Of a DNA stretch of 64,000 nt, positions 1 to 57,250 are shown in pieces; position 1 is the stretch's first letter, and the number at the start of each line of letters is the position of its first letter. Both the position numbers and the translations under genes were made by a program. Source of the DNA: Mytilus californianus (taxonomy: Eukaryota); the NCBI RefSeq assembly GCF_021869535.1, contig NW_026262637.1, positions 26,412,001 to 26,476,000 of the forward strand. The letters are read 5' to 3'. The notes beneath the pieces are model-generated. The model made no database searches, was not told where the DNA came from, and saw only the letters and a program-made list of their open reading frames with translations.

Positions 1-651
1 AACAATATTAATTAACAAAGTAACAAAAGGTTATTACGATTGCTTTAATAAAATGTTATATTAGAAATAAATGTAATCTCCTGTTTGCTCTACTTTGAAT
101 TTGATTCAATAGTTATGTCATTACATCAGGTTAAAAATCAATTATGTTTTCAAAAAACATTTCCATATAAAAATGTAATGTCTGATAAATAAAGGATAAT
201 ATCCACTGTTCCTTATTTCACAACATAGCTTAAGATAGTTATTTTCTTATTTTCATAATCTAAAATCTCATAGGTTTTTTGCAAGTTACAATTTCTTTCT
301 TTCTTAAAGTCTATTAAATAAATCCTCATATATATATACCAAACTAGATTCAGTTAATTAGAATATGCCTGGTAAATCCCAGCCGAAAAAAATTGGCACA
401 AAATGAATCAAGAATGCCTTTAAAAAGTCATACAATGATGTTTTATACTGTTATAAATGACAGAATTGATGATAAATAACAAATTGATGATAATTGGACT
501 TTCAAAACATACAAGTTAATCATTGATTTTGTAATGTCTTGTATATCCTGCCGTATTAAGACAGACTTAATATATGCCACCTGCACTTTACAATACTATA
601 ACAATATGTATTACAAATTTATCAGTTAAAACACCTAAGCATTAACCAAGG

Positions 652-3600
652 TCATCCTCTAGCATCAGCTACACCAGAGGGCACCTCTATTTCCCAACCG
701 TCCATTTCCTTAGTTACTATCACCTGGCAACCTAACCTTGACCTGAAAATACAATAAGTCATCAGTTGAATGTCTTTTATTTCAATTGCATTCTTTGTTA
801 AATACTTTAATTTGCATTTGTAGACTGATATCTGAAATAACTGATCCTTTTTATTCATATCAACTCTGTCAGACCAGACCATATTTTAGAGTATGTTGCC
901 CTATGATGTTTTTTTTTTTACTATAAATTATACATTGTATAAGCTATAGATATATTTTAAATTTCTTAATGTCGTGGAGGTTGCTCTGTGGTATGATTTC
1001 TATCTTTGTTAAAGACAGTATATTGACTTCTAATTGCTATGTATCAAAATCAAACATGTCAAATTGGCTGTTTTGGATGTGCTGTTCTTTCTTTAACAAA
1101 TTATTCATTTGTTTTTGCATAGAGTAGATTTTTAAAAAAGACAAAATGTGCCATGTGTAAGGTTACTTTGCCTGAAGTAGTTGGAAACTTTGTCATGATT
1201 TTGATTATATTCTTTTCCTTGTATATTATATTATAAACTTAACATGAAGATTCTCCACATTTTCTTTCTCTGTAATCAATTTTTAAACTGGAAGTGATAT
1301 CTTACATGACATTATGGAATTAGTCATCAATAACATTCCATAAACAACATAACAATAACATTCGATGAACACCATACAACATTTTAGTACTGACCATGTT
1401 TGTTATTAATATCTACACTTACGTATCACTTAAACCAAAAGCTAGATCCAACATGTCAAGTTCTTCGTCTGTAGGTTTTTCATGGATTTGATCGTATTGA
1501 TCTGGCTTGAAGATTAAATGACAAGTAGAGCACGCCAGGGTTCCCTCACAAGCACCTGTTCATAAATTGATTTTTGCAAATAAATAGTGACAAATAAGTC
1601 TGACAACTGATAATTGTTATTGTAAATGGTGTGATTTTGATATGAAGGCTTATTGTTACTGATGTAGTAAGATCATGTCATGATTTGTTTTCCATTCTAT
1701 AGAGCATTAATTTGTCAATAAAGTGATGTTTTTTTATCCATGTATAAAATATTCTCAGTATCCCAGTGTCCATTTCATTGTATCATTTCTATTCCATTAT
1801 CATTTGGTTACAAGGAATAAAAAATCTGATTAGACTTTGACAAATTGCCCCTCTGAATGTCAGAAGTTGTCATAACTCTTTAAAAGTCTAATTGACCAAT
1901 GGGTCTTTAAATAAAAGTGACTTATTGTATGAACCTTTGTCCTAGCAATAAATTTTCCATTAAATGGTAGAAATTTCAAATAATTGATTAACTGATGGTG
2001 TTTAACGCCACTTTCAGCACACATGACAATAATATCATGGCTACAAGTTTTTAAGGAAGTCAGAATAAATGGAAAGAATATGGACCTTCAACATTAAATA
2101 AATGACTGAACATAATTCCTGAAAAGATTATACAATTTAAAATTCTCAAAGTGGTTAAATTTCATATTTAATCTATAGTAATATATAAATTTTTAGCTTT
2201 CATCATACATGTTTATGGTTTCCAATTTTTTAAAATAAGTTATTTCATGTATTTGAATGTACAACATGTATAATTAAATTATGTACAAACCAAATCCATC
2301 CACATCAATATCATTATCTATAATGATATCTAGTAGATTATCACCAACTTTGGCTATAGCTGTATGTTCTGAACCATCAGTTAACTTGAAGCAAAGTGAC
2401 ACTCTGAAAATATAAAATTTAACCACTTATTCATACTAAATATTTAAATACCTTCTAATTCTATATCATTATCTATAGCCACATCCAGAAAGTTGCTGCC
2501 CACGCCAGCATTTACTGTTATACGGTCCCCATCTCTATCCACAAAGTATAAACAAATTCTGTAAAAAAACAAGGATATATGGGTTCATGGTTCCACACAA
2601 TCTCTCATTAATAATCAAAAGGATTGGAACAGTAAAAAATTTTGCCAAAATTAAGTTTTCAGACTTTTTCCCTGATCAGGCAACACTGAGCATTTACCTT
2701 GAACTTGTTACAATTTTGAAAGAAAATCAATAATCACCTGATTGCATTTTATAGCTATGGGCAACAATTGACTAGTTAATAAAGGTGTTGATTGTTTTGT
2801 TTAATGAAATTGTGTGGTTAAATGGCATCACATGTCACCTAAAGGATTTATTTACAACTTTGATAGAAATAAATGTTTTGAAGTGGGTACTTCACAATTG
2901 TTGTTTATAGACGCATGTGTTTGAAGCATAGTTTTTTTCTTTTAACGATGGTCCGAAAACGAAAACTGTTATTATGACGAAAACTGTTCAAAAGTAAGAC
3001 AGATATCCGACTTTAAACTTTATCCTTTTACTTTGATAGCAATAACTGTTCTGAAGAGGGTACTGTACAATCGTTTTAGCGACGCACGTGTTTGAAGCAT
3101 AGTTTTATGTCTCGACTTTTTCTATTGACGATGGTCAGGAAAAGAAAACTGTTGTCATGAAGAAATGTATTCAAAAGTTTGAAAAATCTCTTGACTTTAG
3201 TCTTTATTCTTCATTTAGACGGGAAGCAAGGGTCCTGAAATGGTCATATTTGCCAGTCATGACCGAAACAGAAAGCTATTTGTCCTAAACGACAGATTGG
3301 GATTTAGGACAAATTTTATTTTTTTACAGAAATAATTTCTGCCATTTCGTTGAGATCGGGTTTCTTAATCACCATTTTGCACTTGTTTTTGTTTTGATAT
3401 CCCTTTCCTGAAAAAAAAACTGCCACTCCAGTATAGTATGATAATCCTGAGGGCCCTCCTAATAACTATGTTAATGCCTCTGGGAAATATTGGCTAATGA
3501 TCGCTAATCACTTTTTACCTGTGTTTTTAATTCACACCTGACATTGATCACCATCTCAGAACTAATATCATAATGAAATTAAAATTCCATGGCAACTGTC

Positions 3601-6325
3601 TTCATTATTTAATTACTTTTCAGCAAAGACAATCTTCAATTCTGATTTAAAAATCAAAACTTTAATAATTTAATTTACGTAGAAAATAGTAATTTTTCAC
3701 AAGTTACACATGTGCTTTATTTGCTATGTAATATGCATGCGTGAAATTGTCTTCAGCAGATTAGACACTTAATCGTAAAATGCAAAAAAATTTCATGCTT
3801 AAAAAAACAAGTGGAACTATTATCTGTGAAATTTAAACACTTGTAAAGGTAATAAAATTAAAAAGCTGGTGATTTCCTGTCAATTTAATAAACAAAACGA
3901 ATCCACTCGTACTTGAGTATCGTCCAAAAACATACGGTTTTAATTTCGTCTTCAAAATCGAAAGAAACGTTAGCGATGTCTGAGAAATTTACCATTTCCA
4001 GTCATTAATATCATTTTAATTTTAAACTGTTCTTTTATGTTTTAAGAAAAATGGTAGGAAAATTCATGAAGTAAATGTGATAAAACAGTCAATACAAGTT
4101 CGTTGATGCTATGAATCTAGTATGATTTCAACAATTTTTTTGAAAAAAGGGCACCAACTTTAAGTTATCTCAAAATGACTGAAATTGTGTGTAAAAATTT
4201 CTGGATCCTTGACGAGAAGTATCGGATACTTATTGAAGATGAATTCCTTGTTCGTAGAAGTCAAAAATTGTGATTTCATGATCTATATTGCAATTTTACA
4301 GTATCTTTTAATAAAATGCTCCACTGGGGCGCAGCTTGATACGACCAGAGGTCGAACCCTGAACAGTTGGAGCAAGTATAGACACAACATTCAAGCTTGA
4401 TACAGCACTGAATTTGGATTGTAATTAAATATTTGACACAGCATAGGTTTCTGACACATAATGAATGTGGTCTAAGAACTTAAAAAATTTTAATTTACCT
4501 ATTCAAACCATATCATTATTATTTGCTTTTATATATAATTCAGAAATAACCAATTTAAAATGGAAAATTTTACAGAAAAAAATGAAAAAAAAAATCCACC
4601 CCCCAAATTTTTTGAACCCCCTTATGATTCATCACCCCCAAACTCAATCCCAGCCTTCCCTTTGTGGTATGGTACCTTGCAGTACAATTTCAGAGAGATC
4701 CATACACTTGAACACAAGTTATTGTCTGGAAACTAGAAAAATGCTTATTTTTTGTCCCTTTTTGGCCCCTCATTCCTACAATTTTGAGGCAATTACCCCC
4801 AAAATCAATCCCAGCATTCCCTTTGTGATATGGAACCTTGTGGTACAATGTCAGAGAGATCCATACACTTACACACAAGTTATTGTCATGAAACTAGAAA
4901 AATGCTTGTTTTTTTGCCCCTTTTTTGGCCCATAATTCCTTAAATTTGGAGGCAATTACCCCCAAAATCAATCCCAGCATTCCCTTTGTGATATGGAACC
5001 TTGTGGTACAATGTCAGAGAGATCCATACACTAACACACAAGTTATGTCTGGAAGTTACAAAAATGCTTATTTTTGGCCCCTTCTTGGCCCCTAATTCCT
5101 TAAATGTTGGTACCATAACCCCCAAAATCAATCCCCACCTTCCTTTTGTGGTATTGAACCTTATGGTAAAATTTCATAGAGATCCATTCACTTAAACTAA
5201 AGTTAGAGTGCGAAAACCAATGTGTCTTCGGACGACGACGTCATACCAATATACGACGTATAAAAAGTAAATGTTTGTTATTATTGAGTGTCTGTTTATA
5301 ACAAGGTACATGTAGATTAAAGAAAAAAATAAGAATTATAATAGACAACAATGTGGCAAACTGATGTTTTTTTTGTTGGAAAGAATTATAAACGTAAAAT
5401 ATGTTTATTTCACATGTTGGCGAAAAAAAAATTGAAAGTGCCGAAAGCTATGTTATGGCGAAAGAGGTGGCGAAACAAAAAATTGAGCCAGGGGAAACCC
5501 TGGTAGTATATCTATGCATTTTAATAAAATTGAGAATGGAAATGGGGAATGTGTCAAAGAGACAACAACCCGACCACAGAACAGACAACAGCAGAAGGCC
5601 ACCAACAGGTCTTCAATAAGTCTATTATAATTCTGTATAGAATGGCTCTCATTTCATGTAGAATTGTTTTTACAATTTATACTTGTTAAGAGATGAGACT
5701 ATAATAAAACATTTAATTGAATTGAATTGTAATCAGGGCGAACAGACCTGATACCTCTTAATACAGAGGGATTAAATCATTATTATTTGAATGGCGAGTT
5801 GGCAGGCCTAAAGTTTCTGGGGGAATCAATTTCTTTTCATTAGTGGGGTGAGTTGGCAGAAAATGGGGCAAGTTTGAAGAAAGTTAGGGCAAGTTGGTCT
5901 GGGGCGATTTGGCAATGGAGCAAGTTCTCATGGATTCTCAATAAAATAATACATTATAAATAATATTTTATTGTTATTAACACAAATAAACCAATTTTAG
6001 CCCATCAGACTCATCCAGACTTTTACAGACTCTTCAGTATGACACCTTTAGCCTAACCATACACATTTTGAACCAATGTTTTGGAATTCTAAAATCGTCA
6101 AAGGTTCAGATAGGGATTACGCAATGTCAGCGAATGAACCCTGGTCGGCAAGTGAACTTACGTTTCTTTCTTTGGTTTAGGAACCGATGCTGAAAATTTT
6201 TGAACAGACATTACTTTCGGAACATTTCTTCTTTTCGCACATATCGGAACTGTTAATGATCGACCAATACATAAGGCAAATTTAGGAATTAAGCACACTG
6301 GTCTTCTCAACCCTGACAGAGACAT
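652..6325 (-). CDS. FDX1: Mitochondrial adrenodoxin-type [2Fe-2S] ferredoxin, spliced; two isoforms of about 164 and 166 aa
   Basis: Exons (minus): 6325-6162 (basic presequence [16 protein letters not shown]...PKPKKE, donor AC|GTAAGT, phase 2); alternative exon 2558-2452 or 2403-2291 (phase 2 to 1); 1555-1423 ([16 protein letters not shown]...[17 protein letters not shown] acceptor, GTAAGT donor, phase 2); 742-652 ([30 protein letters not shown]). The C-x5-C-x2-C...C cluster motif and the [12 protein letters not shown] segment match adrenodoxin/FDX1. Confidence 0.95.
2291..2403 (-). CDS. Ferredoxin alternative exon B, FDX1-like ([38 protein letters not shown])
   Basis: Acceptor atattttcag|A, donor G|gtttgt; 113 nt = 1+111+1; open frame; KVGDNLLD...DVDGFG resembles FDX1 KVGDSLLD...DIDGFG. 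Confidence 0.9.
2452..2558 (-). CDS. Ferredoxin alternative exon A, FDX2/Yah1/MFDX-like ([36 protein letters not shown])
   Basis: Acceptor tttttttacag|A, donor G|gtattt; 107 nt = 1+105+1; open frame; homologous to exon B. Confidence 0.88.
2857..3240. repeat. Diverged local tandem duplication (about 175-190 bp, slightly over 2 copies) in ferredoxin intron 1
   Basis: actttgatag...gaag(t/a)gggtac...gacgca(t/c)gtgtttgaagcatagtttt...acgatggtc...gaaaactgtt occurs at 2857 and again at 3030. Confidence 0.75.
4320..5268. mobile_element. Non-autonomous element with an internal ~161-bp tandem array (pearl/MgE/HINE-like architecture)
   Basis: Units start at 4640, 4801, 4964 and 5124 (caaaatcaatcccagcattccctttgtg...); terminal GAC microrepeat and palindrome TATACGACGTATA followed by an A run near 5250-5268; left boundary approximate. 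Confidence 0.65.
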
Positions 6326-6786
6326 CGTCGAAGTGAAATTATCTGGTTCCAATATCATTACCATGAATAGGCTAAGATAGGGACAACAGTAGAACAAACC
6401 AGTCGTTATGTTGATACAAATGACAGAATCCCGTACAAAACGAATAATTATCTAAATATATCAGTTTATCTTCTGAATCACTCAAAAATTTCATATTATA
6501 ACCATAAAAGAAAAAATATTTAACTTGCATAGAATTTTTAAAAAAATGATTGTGTAACAATGTTTCTTGAATAATTTCACATTACTGTTATTGTGGATTG
6601 TAAATCATTCAATACCTTGGTTGCATAATACTGATAAGTAATCAGGTGTTAGTCCATTTTCAATTTTATACATTAGAATTGATTGTAGGCATTTTACTCT
6701 TTCTGTAAAGGAAAGCCATTTTAAAGGAGAAAACATAAAATTTGACGTTGGTATGTATATAAATGAATTGATGAATCAACACTTAC

Positions 6787-13760: not shown

Positions 13761-16328
13761 TTAATGTTGAATAGGGTACGGTTCAGAAATACACATTTCA
13801 GGTACAGGTGCATTATCATAAACAGTATTATTGAACACTGCTAAAGCTGGCACATCGAATGTCGCTGTCCTGTCAAAGAAATTAAAGGGTTTAAGCGTGA
13901 ATCCTGATTCTACTTTAATTGTCATGGGAACATCTTCAGATGTAGGAATATGTAGAAATCCAACTGATAACCAAGTCACTATATCTTCATTTGCGATAGA
14001 CTCGTCATCTAACATATCTTGTAAATATAATTGTGTAGGAGATGTATCATTAAAAAGTTTATTATCCACTGGAAAATACAGAGGTTTTAAGTATTGTTCA
14101 TTATCTTTCTGTTTAGTTATTGCACAGTGATATTTTGTAAACGAAAGTTCCTGCATTCTTGGATAATCGTCAGGAAGATTTTGTGAACTTGTTGTCATAG
14201 GAATAATTCTATAGCCGCGGTTAACACCATGTTTATTTTTCTTGTTTCTATTGATCATGGTCCAATATTTTTGGTTTTCCGTGTCAACTTTAAGTCCAGT
14301 TTCCTTCTCTACATAATCCCATTCTATATATCTAGTATGATTGTAAAAGAAATAATTCGAAGAGTCGGTTTTACTTTTGTTTTTCATTGCACGGTTGTTA
14401 TCGCCGTATTTCCAATGAATTAACTGGAAGTCATTTTCTTTGCCAGCTACATCCATATCTACCTTAAATCCAAATGTATGATCATGTATTGGACCAATGA
14501 GAGAATTTGTAACTTTGTACCCGAACGGAGTTTGAACATCTGAAGACGGATTCCAAAAAGACCCCTGAATAAAACCAGTGGCAGAAGCAGTTGTCTTAAC
14601 TCTTCCATCGAGATAAAACTGAAAATCAATAATGTAGTCATAGTTACCAACCTGTGTAGGATACCTAGCCACCAAAAAGTTGTTGTTAAGTCCGCCTTCA
14701 ACATGCGGCCCTTTGTGCCGCCATAAAGGATCTTGAGCATTAACCTCGAAAATACAAAATGTCGGTAAAATTGAAGGTTTTAGTCCTCTGGGATTCCAAC
14801 TCGAACTGTTCAAGTAGGACGCGTAAACTGGACAGTCAACTCGCGGAATGGCCCGTTTTGCCTCTCCTAACCCATACACAGAATCCAGGTATACCATGTT
14901 ATCTTGTCCTGAGCCATCAGCAGAATAAACCAGTGCTATCTCGTTCAAAGAATTTTCGTAAATTATTCTTTCTCCCTGAAATCTTACATCAAATATTGAC
15001 GGTCCTCTGTGTTGACCCGTAGAAACAGTGAACGACCAACCCATCCAATTGACAGCATGACCAGAAATTGTATATCTAGGACCATGAGGTTCGTATGTAC
15101 TAGTTCCCGGATACTGGGATTCCGGTCTTACAGGAGAGTAAACATTTCTAATCGGAAGAGTCGATTGAATTATATGCTCTTTGTACCCTTCCGGATATTT
15201 TATATACTTCAGTTTTCCACTGTTATATACATTTATCAGCTCTGTTATATTTGAAAACGGACCTTGATTTAAGTAAAAGAAGTCAAATGTATACCAATCT
15301 GACGTGTTTTGTCCGCTATGGGACAATCTTCCAGTAAATGGTAGGATGTTTAAGAAGTCGAACTCTTTATCACCTAAACCTCTTAATCCTATTGTAAACC
15401 GACTAACTCTCCCAGATCCGTCATTATATGGCCCATTCGGCATGATAGAAACGTCTTCGTACACGTTGTTTATGTCAAAACTGTCTTTCAGTAGCACCGC
15501 TAGTTTATCTAAATCCGCTAGAATGAAAAAAATTATCTCCCCTATTTCAACATTATCATAAGGTCTACTTTCATACGGCACCTCTCCATTTTCCAATAGC
15601 TTGGTCACTTTGACAGCGGGTGATTGTCCCTCCAATGGGCCAATCTTATATTGCATATAATCCTTTTGGTCAATATTACCTCTGATGACGACTGCAGTTG
15701 CGTATCTACCCGGGAACTTGCCTTCATCGTCTAAATACTGCAAAGCTGCACTTTTGTTAGGTGGATGTAAGAACATTGTTCCTATGAAATTAGATTTGAA
15801 CGAAATCTCTTGACCATGATCAACGTCTACAATTTTAAAGTCCACCAGAGTTCTATGAACGAGGATCATTTCTTCAGCACTCAGAGGAGCAAATAAATTA
15901 GGTCGTTCTGATGGCAGGATCGGATTTCTCCAGACACACCTTTTACATGTATGTAAATCAGAATCATCTGATGTCGTTGTGTGCTCCCCGTCTTTGTTCA
16001 TGACATTTCCGGTTTCGTCTAATGTCTCCTTACCACGATTTACTAATGACGGAATATCATTTGTAGCTGTTGTAATAACTGGTTGTACGGCGTGTTTGGT
16101 TTCCAACCTTCCTGTATCTCTTTGGTTTTGACAGTTTTCCGTCTGTGCTAATTTTGATTCGTTACCATTGTACACAAATATTCCAATGCAAAGCCCTGCA
16201 GCAAAGCCGATGATAAAAACTATTATACCTAATAATTGTCCACAAACAAGAATTTTTAAAGATGAAGTCTTCTTTTCGTTCGTTTCGTTGGTGAACTCGT
16301 ATGCACGGTTTGAATAGTTGTTTGACAT
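13761..16328 (-). CDS. Copper-containing (TPQ) amine oxidase, AOC1/AOC3-like, type II membrane anchor, 855 aa, single coding exon
   Basis: TQVGNYDY topaquinone motif (Tyr codon 14640-14642), HDH copper ligands (14478-14486), third His in GFLHIP, catalytic base in YLDSVYGLG, N-terminal hydrophobic helix. The ORF-track 5' extension runs into an intron (acceptor tttttag| at 16351/16350), so the start is placed at MSNNYS. Confidence 0.93.
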   Translation of the reverse strand: MSNNYSNRAYEFTNETNEKKTSSLKILVCGQLLGIIVFIIGFAAGLCIGIFVYNGNESKLAQTENCQNQRDTGRLETKHAVQPVITTATNDIPSLVNRGKETLDETGNVMNKDGEHTTTSDDSDLHTCKRCVWRNPILPSERPNLFAPLSAEEMILVHRTLVDFKIVDVDHGQEISFKSNFIGTMFLHPPNKSAALQYLDDEGKFPGRYATAVVIRGNIDQKDYMQYKIGPLEGQSPAVKVTKLLENGEVPYESRPYDNVEIGEIIFFILADLDKLAVLLKDSFDINNVYEDVSIMPNGPYNDGSGRVSRFTIGLRGLGDKEFDFLNILPFTGRLSHSGQNTSDWYTFDFFYLNQGPFSNITELINVYNSGKLKYIKYPEGYKEHIIQSTLPIRNVYSPVRPESQYPGTSTYEPHGPRYTISGHAVNWMGWSFTVSTGQHRGPSIFDVRFQGERIIYENSLNEIALVYSADGSGQDNMVYLDSVYGLGEAKRAIPRVDCPVYASYLNSSSWNPRGLKPSILPTFCIFEVNAQDPLWRHKGPHVEGGLNNNFLVARYPTQVGNYDYIIDFQFYLDGRVKTTASATGFIQGSFWNPSSDVQTPFGYKVTNSLIGPIHDHTFGFKVDMDVAGKENDFQLIHWKYGDNNRAMKNKSKTDSSNYFFYNHTRYIEWDYVEKETGLKVDTENQKYWTMINRNKKNKHGVNRGYRIIPMTTSSQNLPDDYPRMQELSFTKYHCAITKQKDNEQYLKPLYFPVDNKLFNDTSPTQLYLQDMLDDESIANEDIVTWLSVGFLHIPTSEDVPMTIKVESGFTLKPFNFFDRTATFDVPALAVFNNTVYDNAPVPEMCISEPYPIQH

Positions 16329-16900
16329 GGCATTACTCTTCAAATGTGCTCTAAAAATAAACAAAAAATATACTAAGTAACTAAAACCCATAGTATTAAG
16401 CAAGTAATTATTTACTGCAGATTTTTTAAAAAGAAATCACAGAAAAACAAGACAAAATGATATAAAAAATAAATAGAACAAGTTGTTTAAAGAAAGTATA
16501 CCGAATTACATGCCTTTGTCACTCAATAGCACAACATTAAGTAGGTGCTTGCATCTCATATATCTGAATAAACGTGAGATTAAGGATAATACCGAAACCA
16601 GAAAATCTGCTTCACCTGTTGATCGTTTCCACAATATTGATACATATGGAGAACTTCAAACCATCTATGAACACTTTCAACTTTCCAATTGTCAACTTCC
16701 CATTTCTAAGCAGTAACGTACCCTCTGTTCCATCATTTGGCGTATACACACCTTAATTAATACGTTACTTACGCTCGTGCATGTTCACACTTTACCGAAT
16801 TCATTAACAGGAGTGTGTTCCTGACAAAAACTGTCCTAACAAAGTTATGAGGAAAATCGACGGAAATCGGCACTTTTTTTTTACGGTTGCCATCACAAAT

Positions 16901-48800: not shown

Positions 48801-50876
48801 AATATTTTCTCATTGCGTGAATATACCACACTGGAATATAGCCCAAAAGAATTGTCTTAATCGTCGTATGTCAAATTCATAGTACGTAAGTAAACTGTTT
48901 CATTCTTCTTCCAGTTTTCCAAAATTTTACAATTTATAATTATTGTAAATATTGGTATTTTCATATTAACAACATATCAGTGTTATTGCAATAAATTACT
49001 GGATGATTCAGAAAATAAACCACCTTCTTCGACAGATCACTAACCTTTTATAAGAACAAAAGAGATATCCCATACCACACACACAGAAGTTTTATAACAG
49101 TATATATTATACTTTAGACTCGGCATAATTAAATATATATCATAGTTAGTCGCGACACAGTAAAAAATCCCCGAGTTGTCTTCCTTCTTCCAATTCTTTT
49201 TGGCTGGGTTCGTGTTTCTCAATCTATAAAGTGTGTAGTGCTTTATTGACTGTTGTCTGTTCGTCTTTTTTTCTTTTGGTCATGGAATTTTATGTTTTTC
49301 TTCTATTCTTTTATGATTTTTGATTGTCCACTTGGTATCCCCCCTCTACATTATTGACTTCTCGAAAGCTGTAATCTTTATTTTATCACTGCAAGATTCA
49401 TAAATATATAATAATCTTTATTGGACCTTAGTAAGACAAGAGTAATCACTGACATTACTATAATAAAAAAAATATCCTGGTAGAAAAGCGAATAGCCCGC
49501 AAAGGTTCACATCAGCTCAAGTAAAGGATGACTTATAGTTGCTTACATCAATGTCATTTGAACTCTGATGGACAATTACCTCATTAGCAATCATACCACA
49601 CCTCCCTTTTTTAAAGACAATAAAACAAATAGAAAGAATTCATTGGATAAAGTATTGTTTAAACCAAAATAGAGAAAGCTGGAAAACTTAACAAATATAT
49701 CGAACGTTTAATTGCTTATGTCACATGTTTTTTTTCTTTTCATTACAGCTTGATAACATTTCTGGTACATGTACTAATATATGTTTAACATCAAGTTACG
49801 TTGTTACCATTTTAATATCAACTCCTCTATAAAACCTCACTTATAATCATATCAGCAAATGGTATTCAGTTTCCATCCAATATGTCGACGAATATTTCCA
49901 TCTATAAAGCTACATTTTGTATCTCTTTTCAAAATACATTTCTATCTTTGCAGGTAATCAGCAATACCAATGTGACAAATGCCAATTGTCATATAGATAT
50001 CCAAATCCACTTAAATCTCACATGATGTTCAGATGTAGAACACAGGAAGCAGAAATCCAACCATTAAACCCTTACGGGCATCAGTGGAATCCATTCCTAA
50101 CACTAGGTTGCAGCAGCTCACGATCTTGCATACCAAAAACGGACTACACACAGTACTTTCGAAATCATACAACGGGTTATATCAAAGAAGATAAGTGTTT
50201 TACAAATGCTTGGATGACACACTTGTCATCAAAGTCACCACACTCGCGTTTCGATCAAATGTGCATGTCACCACATAATGACTGTTTTGAACATAACGCA
50301 AGATTGTCTCCTCCCAAAGGTATAACATTCAGTCCAGCACAATCACATTTCTTTCCTTTTCAACATTGTACAAATCTTTATTATAATTTGATACCAACAT
50401 CTCCAGCATCCAATGGAACTGATCATGATCCTGAAGCTGTCTGTAAAAACAAAGACATTAAAAGAAACAGTGTTGTTCCTTTACCGTCGGAAATGGAAGG
50501 AGAACCCTTAGACATTTTACCAAAATCGCTTTTAACAAAATGTAAAAGTGGACATATATGTATTTTCTGTGGCAAATTTTACTCCAGGAAGTATGGACTT
50601 AAGATACACCTTCGGACACATACAGGTTATAAACCATTAAAATGCAAGGTCTGCTTACGTCCTTTTGGTGATCCCAGCAACTTAAACAAACACGTGCGTC
50701 TTCATGCAGAAGGAGAGACCCCGTACAGATGTGAATTTTGCAATAAAGTTCTCGTGCGTAGACGGGATTTGGAAAGACACATTCGTTCCCGCCACCCAAA
50801 AGAAACCAGTGCATCCGTTTTGGACAGTGACTCTATCAAAGATAATAGTGATAATGAAGAAATAATTGTTGCTTAA
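42846..50876 (+). CDS. PRDM13: PR/SET domain zinc finger protein 13, 444 aa, 3 exons
   Basis: Exons 42846-43016, 46893-47133 and 49954-50876 (phases 0 and 1; 1335 nt). PR-domain motifs WIKYVQPARDRHEQN and LYAW; first finger YRYPNPLKSH; C-terminal fingers YSRKYGLKIHLRTHTGYKPLKCKVCLRPFGDPSNLNKH...VLVRRRDLERH are diagnostic for PRDM13. AATAAA at 50914-50919. Confidence 0.95.
47485..47610. repeat. Degenerate (ATT/CAT)n low-complexity tract
   Basis: Direct reading of the sequence. Confidence 0.75.
48299..48640 (+). repeat. Longest copy of the gagcaacacgacgggtgccac... interspersed repeat, in PRDM13 intron 2
   Basis: Matches 10300-10555 and 60880-61460; explains the spurious ORF 48417-48671. Confidence 0.75.
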
Positions 50877-53334: not shown

Positions 53335-56300
53335 TCAACCAAATCTTTCATTATTATTGTCTATATCCTGTTGAGTTGGTGCCTTTGGTGCATTCCTACC
53401 GAAAGTAGACTGTAGAAATGAAAACGAAGTGTTTACACCCGAGTGAGCCATTTGTGGAATGACATTTGCAGCGTTCATCAATACCCTGGGATCTTGAGAA
53501 AAACAATTTGGACCAATGTATGGATATGACATTGGAACAATATATCCTAGATTGTCAGAAGTGCTTTGGTGTCTTGGCATTATTTTTGTACCACTTGCAG
53601 CTGCACTTTCGCAGTTTGGATTGTTTTGACTTTTAGCACTGACGGTTTCTGAGTTTATTTTGTCTGATCTTGGAAACACAACTGCTGTGTTGCCTGAGCT
53701 ACCGGACATCCTTCCGACATTTTTGAAGTTCTCACATGTTTTTGAACCTTTGTCATGTAGACGTTTTGAACTTTCCGAAGTTAAATTCACCGGGTTTCTA
53801 ATGTCAATGTCTTTCAAGCGCTTGCCATCATTTTCTGTTGTTTCAGCTTTTCGTTTTTCACCCGACGGTTTTATAAGAGGCTGACTTGGTTCATTCACGG
53901 GTTTAAAGTCCGCAACCACAGACAGTGGATTGCCTCCGGTCAAAGCGTCAGGAGATATTTTGATATTAAGTGTAATTGATGGAAAGGATGGGTTTGGCGT
54001 CGCAATCTTTGATTTTACATCTGCCTTTGTCGCTTCTTCAGTTTCTGAAGCTAAAAATAAAATCATATCATATTGAACGTTAAATACACAAACTTTAGAT
54101 GAATGATTATTATATTTCAAATCCAATGGATAGATTTGATTAAAATCATGAAAAAAAAGCGGAACGTGAAATTAAATGATAGTGCTTCCTTCTTTAATTA
54201 TTATTGAGAAGACCATGTACGCAGATTGCCACAGAAAGGCTATGTAGGCTAAAAGAGAAGCACACAGCTGGCTTTATTGAAACAAGTTTTTTGTAGTTAT
54301 ATGTATAAAAATTCAAAAGCGCCATCGATGAATACATTAGCTTTGTTAAACTTTAAACTATAGAGTAAGCAGTATTAATGTATATACCTTCTAATGTGTT
54401 GATATTTAAGGATCTGATCCATTTTTTGAGTTCTAGTCTGTCATTGTCATCTAATCGCTGCAGTAGTTCTCTAACTTTTGTTTTTGCATCTACCAATGAC
54501 AGCATCCTTGTACCTGCGAACAATTTAGAAAGGTTAAATGTGGAGCTCTTAGGGTAGTACGGGAGTATGATTGAAAAAGGTCGGGAATTACATAAACGGT
54601 ACCAATTTTACTGCACCAGACGAGAGTCGTAAATTTTGATATCATTGAAAGTAATTTATTTGTGTGCCTTCAGAAAACCGAAGGCATTAACATTATTTTG
54701 TGTTGACTTGTGATATTAACCTAAAAAAAAATTATGAAAGCTTTTGATTTATTAAAAAATTGAAAAAAAATGAAAATATCTTTCTATATACTGTACAGAT
54801 ATATTGTATTAAAGATTTAACTATTTTGTTATAAAAAAAGCTGAACGATGTTTTTTCTTTTGAATTTTCTGTAAGTATTCAACTAGAGCTACTATATCTT
54901 GTCGTATTTTATTTTAGGATTCTTGGCATTAAGGTTTTTTCTAGTCACAAAATTAGTGCTTCTCTCCAGTATTATAATAGCAAAAAAAGAGATTGTTCAC
55001 AACCAGTAGCTTGAAAGTAGGTCAGTGATATATACTTTTTATTCTATATTAAGAAGTAGTTTTATAGCAATATTCGCAAATTTCGTGATCTAAGGAACAC
55101 CATAAATATTTACCCTTCACGGACACTTTTAATTGTTTAGAGAGTGTCAGTCTAAACACTTCTTCCTAAAATATTAATTACTATCATCATTGTCAAAGCA
55201 TTAACTACTTTGGCAGATTATACCACAGAGGACTTTTAGTCAACCAATAAGATTATAGGTAAAACAGCTATTGAATTTGATGCTTTAGAAACACTGTTCT
55301 TGATCAATATTTACCCTAAACACTACGAGTCAAAAGTTCGGATAGTCAAAGATGACAAACAATTTTTTTGATAATGTCCTATACATGCGATATCTTAAAG
55401 TGTAATTGTTGAGACAATCTTTCTTTGTATGGGATCTAGTACGAATGATATCTTTCAATGAGAAAATAGGTAACATTCACACGAACAAATTATTTGTATG
55501 ATTATTTCCAGATATTGCTGGTCCGATGTAAATTTATTAATATAAGTCGGAATATCAAATCTGTATATACCTTTAAATATATTGGTAAAGCACAAAGGAA
55601 ATAATAACGACTCACCAGTACATTAGCGAATGATTACATAGAACAGGGTATAAATGAAAAAGGTAGGGAAGACAAAATGCCCGCAAAGATTCTACGTTTA
55701 TTGTATTACATATTGTCAAAGGTAAGTTTATCAAGGATTTCGCTTTTAAAACCGACATAAATATTGTGTTACAAACGATAACAGGATATATACAAATACA
55801 AACAAAGCTTGTAGTACTTACCGTATATTTCTTCAACAGTGTCCGAATCCTCAGTATCGTCGGACATTTGACCATTCATATCTTTAACAGTTCCCTCGCT
55901 ATTAACGTCATTCTGGTAACTATCTTCGGAAACTCTAGAACAAAGTGTCGGCCTATCATTTATGTCCTTGTCTGATAAATCGATTTCTGTTTTAACTCTG
56001 TCCGGTACAAGTGTTGGGGAATCAAATGTCTGACAAAACATTTTGGAATGTTTACTGTCTGTGATCTGCATTGAAGAATTAGATTGAACTTTATCTTGTT
56101 TTGAGCTGGACACCATTCCGTAACTCTCAGACAGAATGAACTCTGTAGGAGCATTCATTGTTGCACGTGGAAGACCGGTAATGTCGCGAATCATTCGGAC
56201 AAGATCGCTCAATTTATTGACTCCCATCGCGCATGTTCGATACCATGACTGCAAAGGAATAGGCTGCATACTAGTTATGCCTAGATAGAATGGAGAATTT

Positions 56301-57250
56301 TCATATTTCATGTTTTGTGGTCTTTTCTCTTCATACAGTTTGTAAATTGCAACTGGGTCTCTTTCAGGAATTTCCGGTTGTTCCCAGATACACAGTCTGT
56401 TCCCATGGTGATCATATTTACTATGTGCAATAGAGTTTTGGACATCTACTGGTTCATAAATCATGTACTTCTTTCCGTTTTGGTTAGTTTTAAGTTTGAT
56501 ATCACCCCACAGAAGATTTTTGTGGTCTATAGCTTTCCTTAACCTAAAATGAACAATAAACAAGAAACACAGTGTATTTATCACTGACATCGGAGTGTAT
56601 GGTCCCATTTCATGTGCAGAAAACAAATGGTTGACCTTTTCCAAAGTTAGCCGACCGAAAGGTTCCGGTTGCTTTTTGCTGCCTTTACCAAGTTCCCTTA
56701 GTTTCTGTTGTTTGTATTTCAAAGCATTTCTTGTCCCTACGAAAACACAATCCCTGGTGACAGATTGTGGATAATTCTTTAGTTTAAGATATCGTTCTAC
56801 ACTGCAGAGCATTCCTCTTAAACTGGCGGGTTCGTACTCGTTACCGTCGTGTTTCTTGACTACTGAGAAGAATGCTGACAGATATCTATCGAGATGGACA
56901 GGTTGAATCAACTCTGGTCCGCGGAATTCGTTGATTGATCTTAGGTATGTTATGAAAATACGAATATCCGTATCAGTCTTCCTTTGGGTATTCTTGTTTT
57001 CCATGTTAATACCAAGATCTTCCTCACAGTCATAAACTTCGCTGTCGTTCGCTGTAGATAATCGTCTTTCTGTCGCTCGCCAAGCCTCAAAATTTTCATC
57101 TTCGTTTTCATTGGAAAAATCATCATCGCTGTCAATCGTAAGACTACTGGCGTTGTCAGGAGATGTGCACGCTAGATGGCTATCACCAGAAACGTTTTCA
57201 GTTTTTACAAGTGCAGCTTTTGGAACATCTGTTTCTTCGTGTTCGTCCAT
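53335..57250 (-). CDS. DUF3504 / Crypton tyrosine-recombinase-derived protein (KIAA1958/ZMYM/QRICH1-type domain), 756 aa, 3 exons
   Basis: Exons 57250-55822, 54513-54388 and 54050-53335 (both introns phase 1; 2271 nt); AATAAA at 53310-53315. Motifs NTQRKT, LDRYLSAFF...KHDGNEYEPASL, FRLRKAIDHKNLLWGDI, RDPVAIYKLYEEKRP, PFYL and WY...MGVNKL. Confidence 0.88.

Follow-up and report, generated by a model that had tools for sequence, protein, structure and literature searches.

An FDX1-type ferredoxin gene of Mytilus californianus carrying a conserved pair of second coding exons, mutually exclusive by frame

Anatomy of the ferredoxin gene

The DNA analysed is a 64,000-nucleotide (nt) stretch of the genome of the mussel Mytilus californianus (contig NW_026262637.1, positions 26,412,001 to 26,476,000), hereafter the window. 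On its minus strand, read across positions 1-6700, lies a gene for a mitochondrial [2Fe-2S] ferredoxin in which the second coding exon exists in two homologous copies, A and B. All splice sites read in the gene are AG/GT, and its coding parts are as follows.

6162..6364, minus strand: exon 1, coding part; encodes the putative mitochondrial presequence, with the RefSeq start at ATG 6364
2452..2558, minus strand: alternative exon A; 107 nt, 35 full codons; in XP_052088990.1
2404..2451, minus strand: A-B intron (spacer); 48 nt
2291..2403, minus strand: alternative exon B; 113 nt, 37 full codons; in XP_052088989.1
1423..1555, minus strand: shared exon 3; three cluster cysteines and the acidic partner-binding helix DEELDMLD
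652..742, minus strand: shared exon 4, coding part; SRLGCQ (fourth cysteine), FDX1-type end ...VADARG, TGA stop at 654-652

Exon 1 contains a second in-frame ATG at 6325, which is the start in other Mytilus species, and closes after 6162 at the donor G/GTAAGT (a slash marks the exon boundary), leaving 2 nt of a split codon. The N-terminal 55 or so residues of the precursor are basic, rich in Ser, Leu and Arg, modelled as disordered and unaligned with mature adrenodoxin chains. Exon A, bounded by the acceptor ...tttttttacAG/A and the donor GAAG/GTATTT, encodes strand 1, strand 2, helix 1 and a short loop, ...DNDIELE, ahead of G-ACEG. Exon B (acceptor ...attttcAG/A, donor TTTG/GTTTGT) encodes the same structural elements, but its loop is long and adrenodoxin-like, ...NDIDVDGF ahead of GACEG. 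At the protein level the two are about 46% identical. The cluster cysteines, in CX5CX2C...C spacing, and the acidic helix DEExDMLD are all encoded by shared exons 3 and 4, and the corresponding alignment columns are invariant or nearly so in 120 relatives. A preliminary description of this DNA had placed two intact homologous exons here, and its coordinates, strand, phases, splice sites and 48-nt spacer are correct in every detail, as is the two-residue (Gly-Phe) difference it noted directly before the first cluster cysteine.

Exons A and B have identical phases, each beginning after 2 nt of a split codon and ending with 1 nt of the next. When joined by script from the second ATG, exons 1-A-3-4 give an open reading frame (ORF) of 164 amino acids (aa) and exons 1-B-3-4 one of 166 aa. 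Inclusion of both A and B leads to a stop 10 codons into exon B, as expected from the earlier argument that an A-to-B join shifts the frame, while skipping of both leads to a stop after 2 codons. As both or neither exon means a frame shift and an early stop, productive mRNAs carry a single exon only. By its anatomy the window gene is a genuine mutually exclusive exon pair.

A further junction at this locus appears in a non-RefSeq M. edulis model (P0049, 190 aa), in which the exon A donor is joined to an AG inside exon B. The same internal AG, 35 nt into the exon, is present in the M. californianus window (2368-2403), where the corresponding junction (2452>2368) would remove an 83-nt intron in frame and yield a partly duplicated N-terminal half. 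This junction is probably a modelling artefact.

The exon pair in related genomes

Related loci were fetched and mapped by script, among them a contig of the M. edulis complex (L002) and a metagenome contig (L001). The order is A then B in all mapped loci, exon B is 113 nt long throughout, and exon A is 107 nt wherever its acceptor was read (window, L002, L001, oyster) and about 116 nt in the nemertean Tubulanus. Exon length classes are identical at each locus examined. The intron between the two exons, by comparison, varies greatly in length.

M. californianus window: 48 nt
M. edulis-complex contig L002: 48 nt
Argopecten: 46 nt
Metagenome contig L001: 55 nt (107 nt + 55 nt + 113 nt)
Crassostrea angulata: 503 nt
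Biomphalaria: 931 nt
Tubulanus: 299 nt

The very short A-B intron is a lineage-specific feature of the mussel, the scallop and L001; frame incompatibility is common to all loci. The survey thus places the pair in bivalves, gastropods and a nemertean. By tblastn, Lingula and Ptychodera have a B-type exon only, the sea anemone Actinia an A-type exon only, and Daphnia one exon; a search for hidden second exons in the loci of these four found none.

Several variants of the arrangement were observed. In a Logan contig from run DRR299178, abalone-like by its B exon (L004:369-480), an intact B exon is preceded, at a distance of about 43 nt, by an A-type remnant, ...LLTVAIENEVELK, whose broken frame suggests lineage-specific loss of exon A, or possibly an assembly error in a single run. 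In Daphnia carinata (L009:815-840; proteins P0124 and P0158) the single exon ends GAAG/GTTTTG/GTTAGT, that is with two possible donors 6 nt apart, and the RefSeq D. magna isoform X2 (P0124) is identical over the first 35 residues of the segment and lacks exactly Gly-Phe. Alternative 5' splice sites may make this difference in Daphnia. In Babylonia a gene with the A/B pair whose B exon is divergent (...DLDISGY) and a canonical long-loop gene lie on different contigs, and neogastropods (Babylonia P0184, P0199/P0110; Nucella P0179, P0183) appear to have two FDX1-like genes.

Selection on both exons

Comparison of the window with L002 gives a mismatch of 6.5% in exon A, 5.3% in exon B, 3.0% in exon 3 and 4.4% in exon 4, against 16-18% with many gaps in the flanking introns; the 48-nt spacer differs at 4.2% of positions (2/48) and has no indel. 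The ratio of nonsynonymous to synonymous substitution rates (dN/dS, Nei-Gojobori) in the same comparison is 0.09 for exon A, 0.09 for exon B and 0.03 for exons 3 and 4 together, on small counts of 7, 6 and 8 changes respectively. Over greater distances, in 11 species with both exons, mean identity among orthologous exons is 61% for A against A and 60% for B against B, whereas A and B inside one species share 34-49% (about 41% typically). F-x-DRDGD is invariant and A-I-x-N-D-(V/I)-E-L-E nearly invariant in A exons, and B exons conserve GDNLLD-(I/V)-(I/V)-I-x-ND-x-D-I-DGF. On these alignments purifying selection acts on A and on B alike, and conservation of this kind would not be expected of an unused exon. 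A decaying pseudo-exon is rejected by the dN/dS values and the deep conservation.

Age of the duplication

A maximum-likelihood tree of the exons was built on 35 shared columns. All B exons fall in one clade with amphioxus, hemichordate and echinoderm exons (support 99/97), and the spiralian A exons lie outside it, adjoining cnidarian exons. Exon A, which the preliminary description had assigned to the FDX2/Yah1 type, lies with the exons of cnidarian adrenodoxin-like proteins. In the maximum-likelihood tree the A/B split is older than the protostome-deuterostome split, although, on only 35 columns, a duplication inside Spiralia survives the approximately unbiased test (p 0.23). That the exon pair is older than the mollusc-nemertean split is firm.

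Family assignment and predicted structure

The preliminary description read the pair as a switch between an FDX1-type and an FDX2/Yah1-type N-terminal half on a shared FDX1-type core. Family membership was scored as phmmer bits against PDB sequences.

Exon A alone: FDX1 24.6, FDX2 18.7
Exon B alone: FDX1 28.3, FDX2 not listed, Yah1 14.2
Isoform A: FDX1 124, FDX2 92, Yah1 101, Etp1 108
Isoform B: FDX1 135, FDX2 72, Yah1 96, Etp1 95
Cnidarian orthologue P0050: FDX1 130, FDX2 102

Each exon alone matches adrenodoxin (E 1.6e-4 for A, 1.1e-5 for B), which together with the conservation of both across species speaks against a chance resemblance. The shared FDX1-type core is borne out, since core and ...VADARG end lie in shared exons, and the scores indicate that both isoforms are FDX1/adrenodoxin-type mitochondrial [2Fe-2S] ferredoxins with an FDX1-type core and end. 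The FDX2/Yah1 assignment of exon A is not supported, its own score being 24.6 bits to FDX1 against 18.7 to FDX2, and derivation of this half from FDX2 is ruled out by the PDB scores together with the exon tree.

A functional version of the same idea, that the switch yields an FDX1-type ferredoxin and an FDX2/Yah1-type one for Fe-S assembly, with isoform A doing the job of FDX2, can draw on the loop. In its short loop exon A resembles Yah1, Etp1 and E. coli Fdx, and it needs no gap to align to FDX2; when A replaces B, the whole protein gains 20 bits against human FDX2 and loses 10.6 bits against FDX1. Alignments to E. coli Fdx show P. putida FdxB and a microsporidian adrenodoxin to be equally short-spaced ahead of the first cysteine. 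Nevertheless exon A alone and the entire isoform A both score best to FDX1. Moreover, the C-terminal tail of FDX2, described in the literature as its main specificity determinant and as defining type II ferredoxins (PMC11618653, PMC12855868), is absent from both isoforms, which instead share the FDX1-type end of exon 4; secondary sources on FDX1/FDX2 specificity motifs name only the C-terminus and Glu133. Finally, cnidarian adrenodoxin-like orthologues have the short-loop form only, so a short loop is not diagnostic of FDX2 and is also a state of the FDX1 family. The loop as a separator of FDX1 from FDX2/Yah1 therefore stands in part, being long in adrenodoxin and short in Yah1, Etp1 and E. 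coli Fdx, but fails with the short-looped cnidarian FDX1-like proteins. Altogether we regard an FDX2 role for isoform A as unlikely. The distribution of the two forms suggests instead that the family as a whole, cnidarian FDX1-like proteins included, is ancestrally short-looped, the Gly-Phe loop being a derived state of bilaterian FDX1.

AlphaFold2 models were made of both precursors, with the cluster loop modelled without its cluster. The alternative segment has identical secondary structure in both (strand 68-74, strand 80-86, helix 91-97), with a block predicted local distance difference test (pLDDT) score of 76-92; values are low only in the presequence and the cluster loop. Foldseek returns FDX1 as the top match of both models, at 50-52% identity for isoform A (FDX2 44-46%) and 54-57% for isoform B (FDX2 38-39%). 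Given the shared fold, the alternative part alters the surface of the N-terminal half and the cluster-entry loop, not the ligands or the acidic helix.

How the exon choice may be made

The preliminary description proposed steric exclusion by the short intron. A 48-nt spacer leaves about 29 nt from the exon A donor to any branch point, too little for spliceosome assembly, and in the mussel and scallop A-to-B joining would thus be physically blocked by a spacer too short to splice out. This part of the proposal stands for the mussel and scallop as a plausible reading of their spacers. Steric hindrance is ruled out as a universal mechanism, since exons A and B stand 503, 931 and 299 nt apart in oyster, Biomphalaria and the nemertean respectively. 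The general safeguard against double inclusion is frame incompatibility.

A second candidate device is an RNA stem bracketing exon B.

2408..2427, minus strand: candidate stem, upstream arm; on the branch-point and polypyrimidine region of the exon B acceptor
2150..2169, minus strand: candidate stem, downstream arm; 122 nt after exon B, in a conserved intron island

The arms are 20 nt long and 95% complementary, and their duplex is predicted at -24.8 kcal/mol against -17.9 ± 2.2 for shuffled sequences, a value reached by 3 of 500 shuffles. Both arms are identical in L002 (downstream 20/20) despite an insertion of about 108 nt between exon B and the arm, and in Tubulanus a stem of different sequence occupies the same position (0 of 200 shuffles). 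Pairing of the arms would loop out exon B, so that the conserved 20-nt stem may help in the choice between A and B; we offer it as a lead, not as a finding. Pairing of the A-B intron with the upstream intron was also tried and is not above chance (54 of 500 shuffles). The L002 insertion itself (L002:1200-1330 compared with window 2170-2215) lies just upstream of the conserved island and may be a short interspersed repeat.

Database records, expression and the weight of exon A

Both products of the window gene are already in RefSeq via automated annotation. XP_052088990.1 ('2Fe-2S ferredoxin-like isoform X2', P0051) is identical to isoform A over 164/164 residues and has a 13-residue N-terminal extension, and XP_052088989.1 ('adrenodoxin-like isoform X1', P0168) carries exon B exactly. 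Pairs of short-loop and long-loop proteins are annotated likewise in M. edulis, M. trossulus, M. galloprovincialis and M. coruscus, in other bivalves (Ruditapes, Argopecten, Mizuhopecten, Crassostrea angulata, C. virginica, Saccostrea), in the gastropods Physella, Biomphalaria and Babylonia, and in Tubulanus; from Crassostrea gigas and Pecten maximus the short-loop X2 isoform alone was retrieved. A full-text literature search found no paper describing this exon pair, so the earlier statement that no description was known holds for the papers searched but not for the databases.

One published protein can nonetheless be placed. The oyster 'CgFDX1' is given as 166 aa, 18.30 kDa and an isoelectric point (pI) of 5.38, and isoforms go unmentioned (PMC11817986). 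These values fit the oyster A isoform P0082 (166 aa, 18.37 kDa, pI 5.47) and do not fit the B isoform (168 aa, 18.70 kDa, pI 5.93). The quantitative PCR primers of that study fall in shared exons 3 and 4, making A and B indistinguishable by that assay. A library search with the 35-residue exon A peptide returned many short ORFs running from an A-type exon into the next intron, including three (P0001, P0002, P0041) that continue through the intron into a B-type exon, and also full-length proteins with an A-type loop. Cluster listings for exon A proteins consist of genome-derived models only, and a region-restricted search of the protein collection for exon A transcripts gave 14 candidates and no mussel transcript.

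Certain of these observations, together with others from the loci, weigh against our main reading of the gene as an old, selected pair of alternative exons. For expression of isoform A the support comes from annotation models and the oyster CgFDX1 paper (PMC11817986). In the protein lists, exon B is present in every transcript-sized mollusc contig that encodes a full-length protein (for the oyster B form, the Logan contig P0099), exon A in none, and exon A may be a minor form. The frame-broken exon A of the abalone-like contig indicates that the exon can be lost. As to the stem, none comparable was found in scallop, snail or L001, the oyster is borderline (18 of 200 shuffles), and the candidate is conserved without covariation.

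The transcript-sized contigs and the decayed exon A of the abalone-like contig would suit an exon A that is little used or regulatory, its rare inclusion tuning the amount of productive B mRNA and its protein having no role of its own; the lack of an exon A in Lingula points the same way. A regulatory exon, however, need not keep its protein sequence, and exon A does, with the dN/dS of 0.09, the invariant DRDGD, the nearly invariant ...ND(V/I)ELE end and 61% identity between bivalves and a nemertean. It is also modelled as a confident ferredoxin N-terminal half. This counts against a purely regulatory exon A, and the reading as a little-used or regulatory exon we judge improbable, more so than an FDX2 role for isoform A.

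Other features of the window

Three further ORFs were noted elsewhere in the 64 kb.

13764-16403, minus strand: uninterrupted 880-aa ORF; full copper amine oxidase enzyme domain (PF01179, E 6e-97) and N2 domain
55772-57250, minus strand: 493-aa ORF with DUF3504 (E 7e-20)
49917-50873, plus strand: 319-aa C2H2/BED zinc-finger ORF

An intronless gene as large as the copper amine oxidase ORF is unusual in this genome, and it could be a retrogene or an acquired gene. DUF3504 is a domain linked to Crypton-type tyrosine-recombinase elements. Its ORF and the zinc-finger ORF are likely derived from mobile elements.

Interpretation and comparison with known systems

We consider it highly probable that the window holds an FDX1-type gene with an old tandem duplication of its second coding exon (A then B), in which the single-exon mRNAs are productive and both exons are selected. 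Of the two, exon A would keep the ancestral short loop, and exon B would carry the Gly-Phe loop derived in bilaterian FDX1. The two isoforms would present the same reductase-binding helix with a different surface and a different loop by the cluster, so that redox tuning or acceptor preference probably differs between them.

How FDX1 and FDX2 discriminate between partners is an active question, and human work suggests that short motifs are involved; Schulz et al. (2023) is a motif-swap study of the two ferredoxins. The mussel gene supplies a natural matched pair, since presequence, cysteine ligands, reductase-binding helix and C-terminus are identical between the isoforms, which differ only in the first 36 or so residues of the mature fold and in the two-residue loop by the cluster. 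Two phyla, the molluscs and the nemerteans, have retained it. Comparison of the isoforms is a ready-made experiment on loop and surface. It might be, and we put this forward tentatively, that the Gly-Phe by the cluster is a partner selector that has become switchable at least twice, in the exon pair of molluscs and nemerteans and in the donors of Daphnia, with the pair itself perhaps ancestral to bilaterians. In that case a single FDX1 gene would have two groups of clients, which could be the housekeeping synthesis of lipoyl and heme a for one and mitochondrial P450s for the other. The comparison of isoforms also concerns work on molluscs that takes 'FDX1' for a single protein; the oyster cuproptosis study (PMC11817986) used the short-loop isoform.

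Known systems resemble the mussel gene in different respects. As a splicing arrangement it recalls exons 2 and 3 of alpha-tropomyosin, a steric-hindrance pair whose exons lie too close together for removal of the intron between them. The exons are similarly close in the mussel, scallop and L001 (46-55 nt), but other species with the ferredoxin pair have long A-B introns. In its effect on the protein it is nearer to the mutually exclusive exons a and e of COQ-2 in makers of rhodoquinone, molluscs included (PMC7434440), where a homologous exon pair likewise remodels the core of a mitochondrial protein; COQ-2 is a different gene, and its functional switch has been demonstrated, where that of the ferredoxin pair is putative.

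Among ferredoxins, the cnidarian adrenodoxin-like proteins (Actinia, Nematostella, Acropora and others) have an A-type exon (FIDRDGD...DNDIDLE-GACEG) on an FDX1-type core, but as a single exon, with no B-type exon found in the Actinia locus. The Fe-S assembly ferredoxins FDX2, yeast Yah1, S. pombe Etp1 and E. coli Fdx share the short loop of exon A, yet score only 72-108 bits to the mussel isoforms against 124-135 for FDX1, and the FDX2 tail has no counterpart in the mussel protein. Vertebrate FDX1 (adrenodoxin; for example PDB 3P1M, 1AYF, 1CJE) is the best match of both mussel isoforms in sequence and in fold and has cysteine motif, acidic helix and ...ADAR end in common with them; exon B has the same Gly-Phe loop. 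The matched adrenodoxins are all of the long-loop form only, and to this form the mussel gene adds a short-loop exon.

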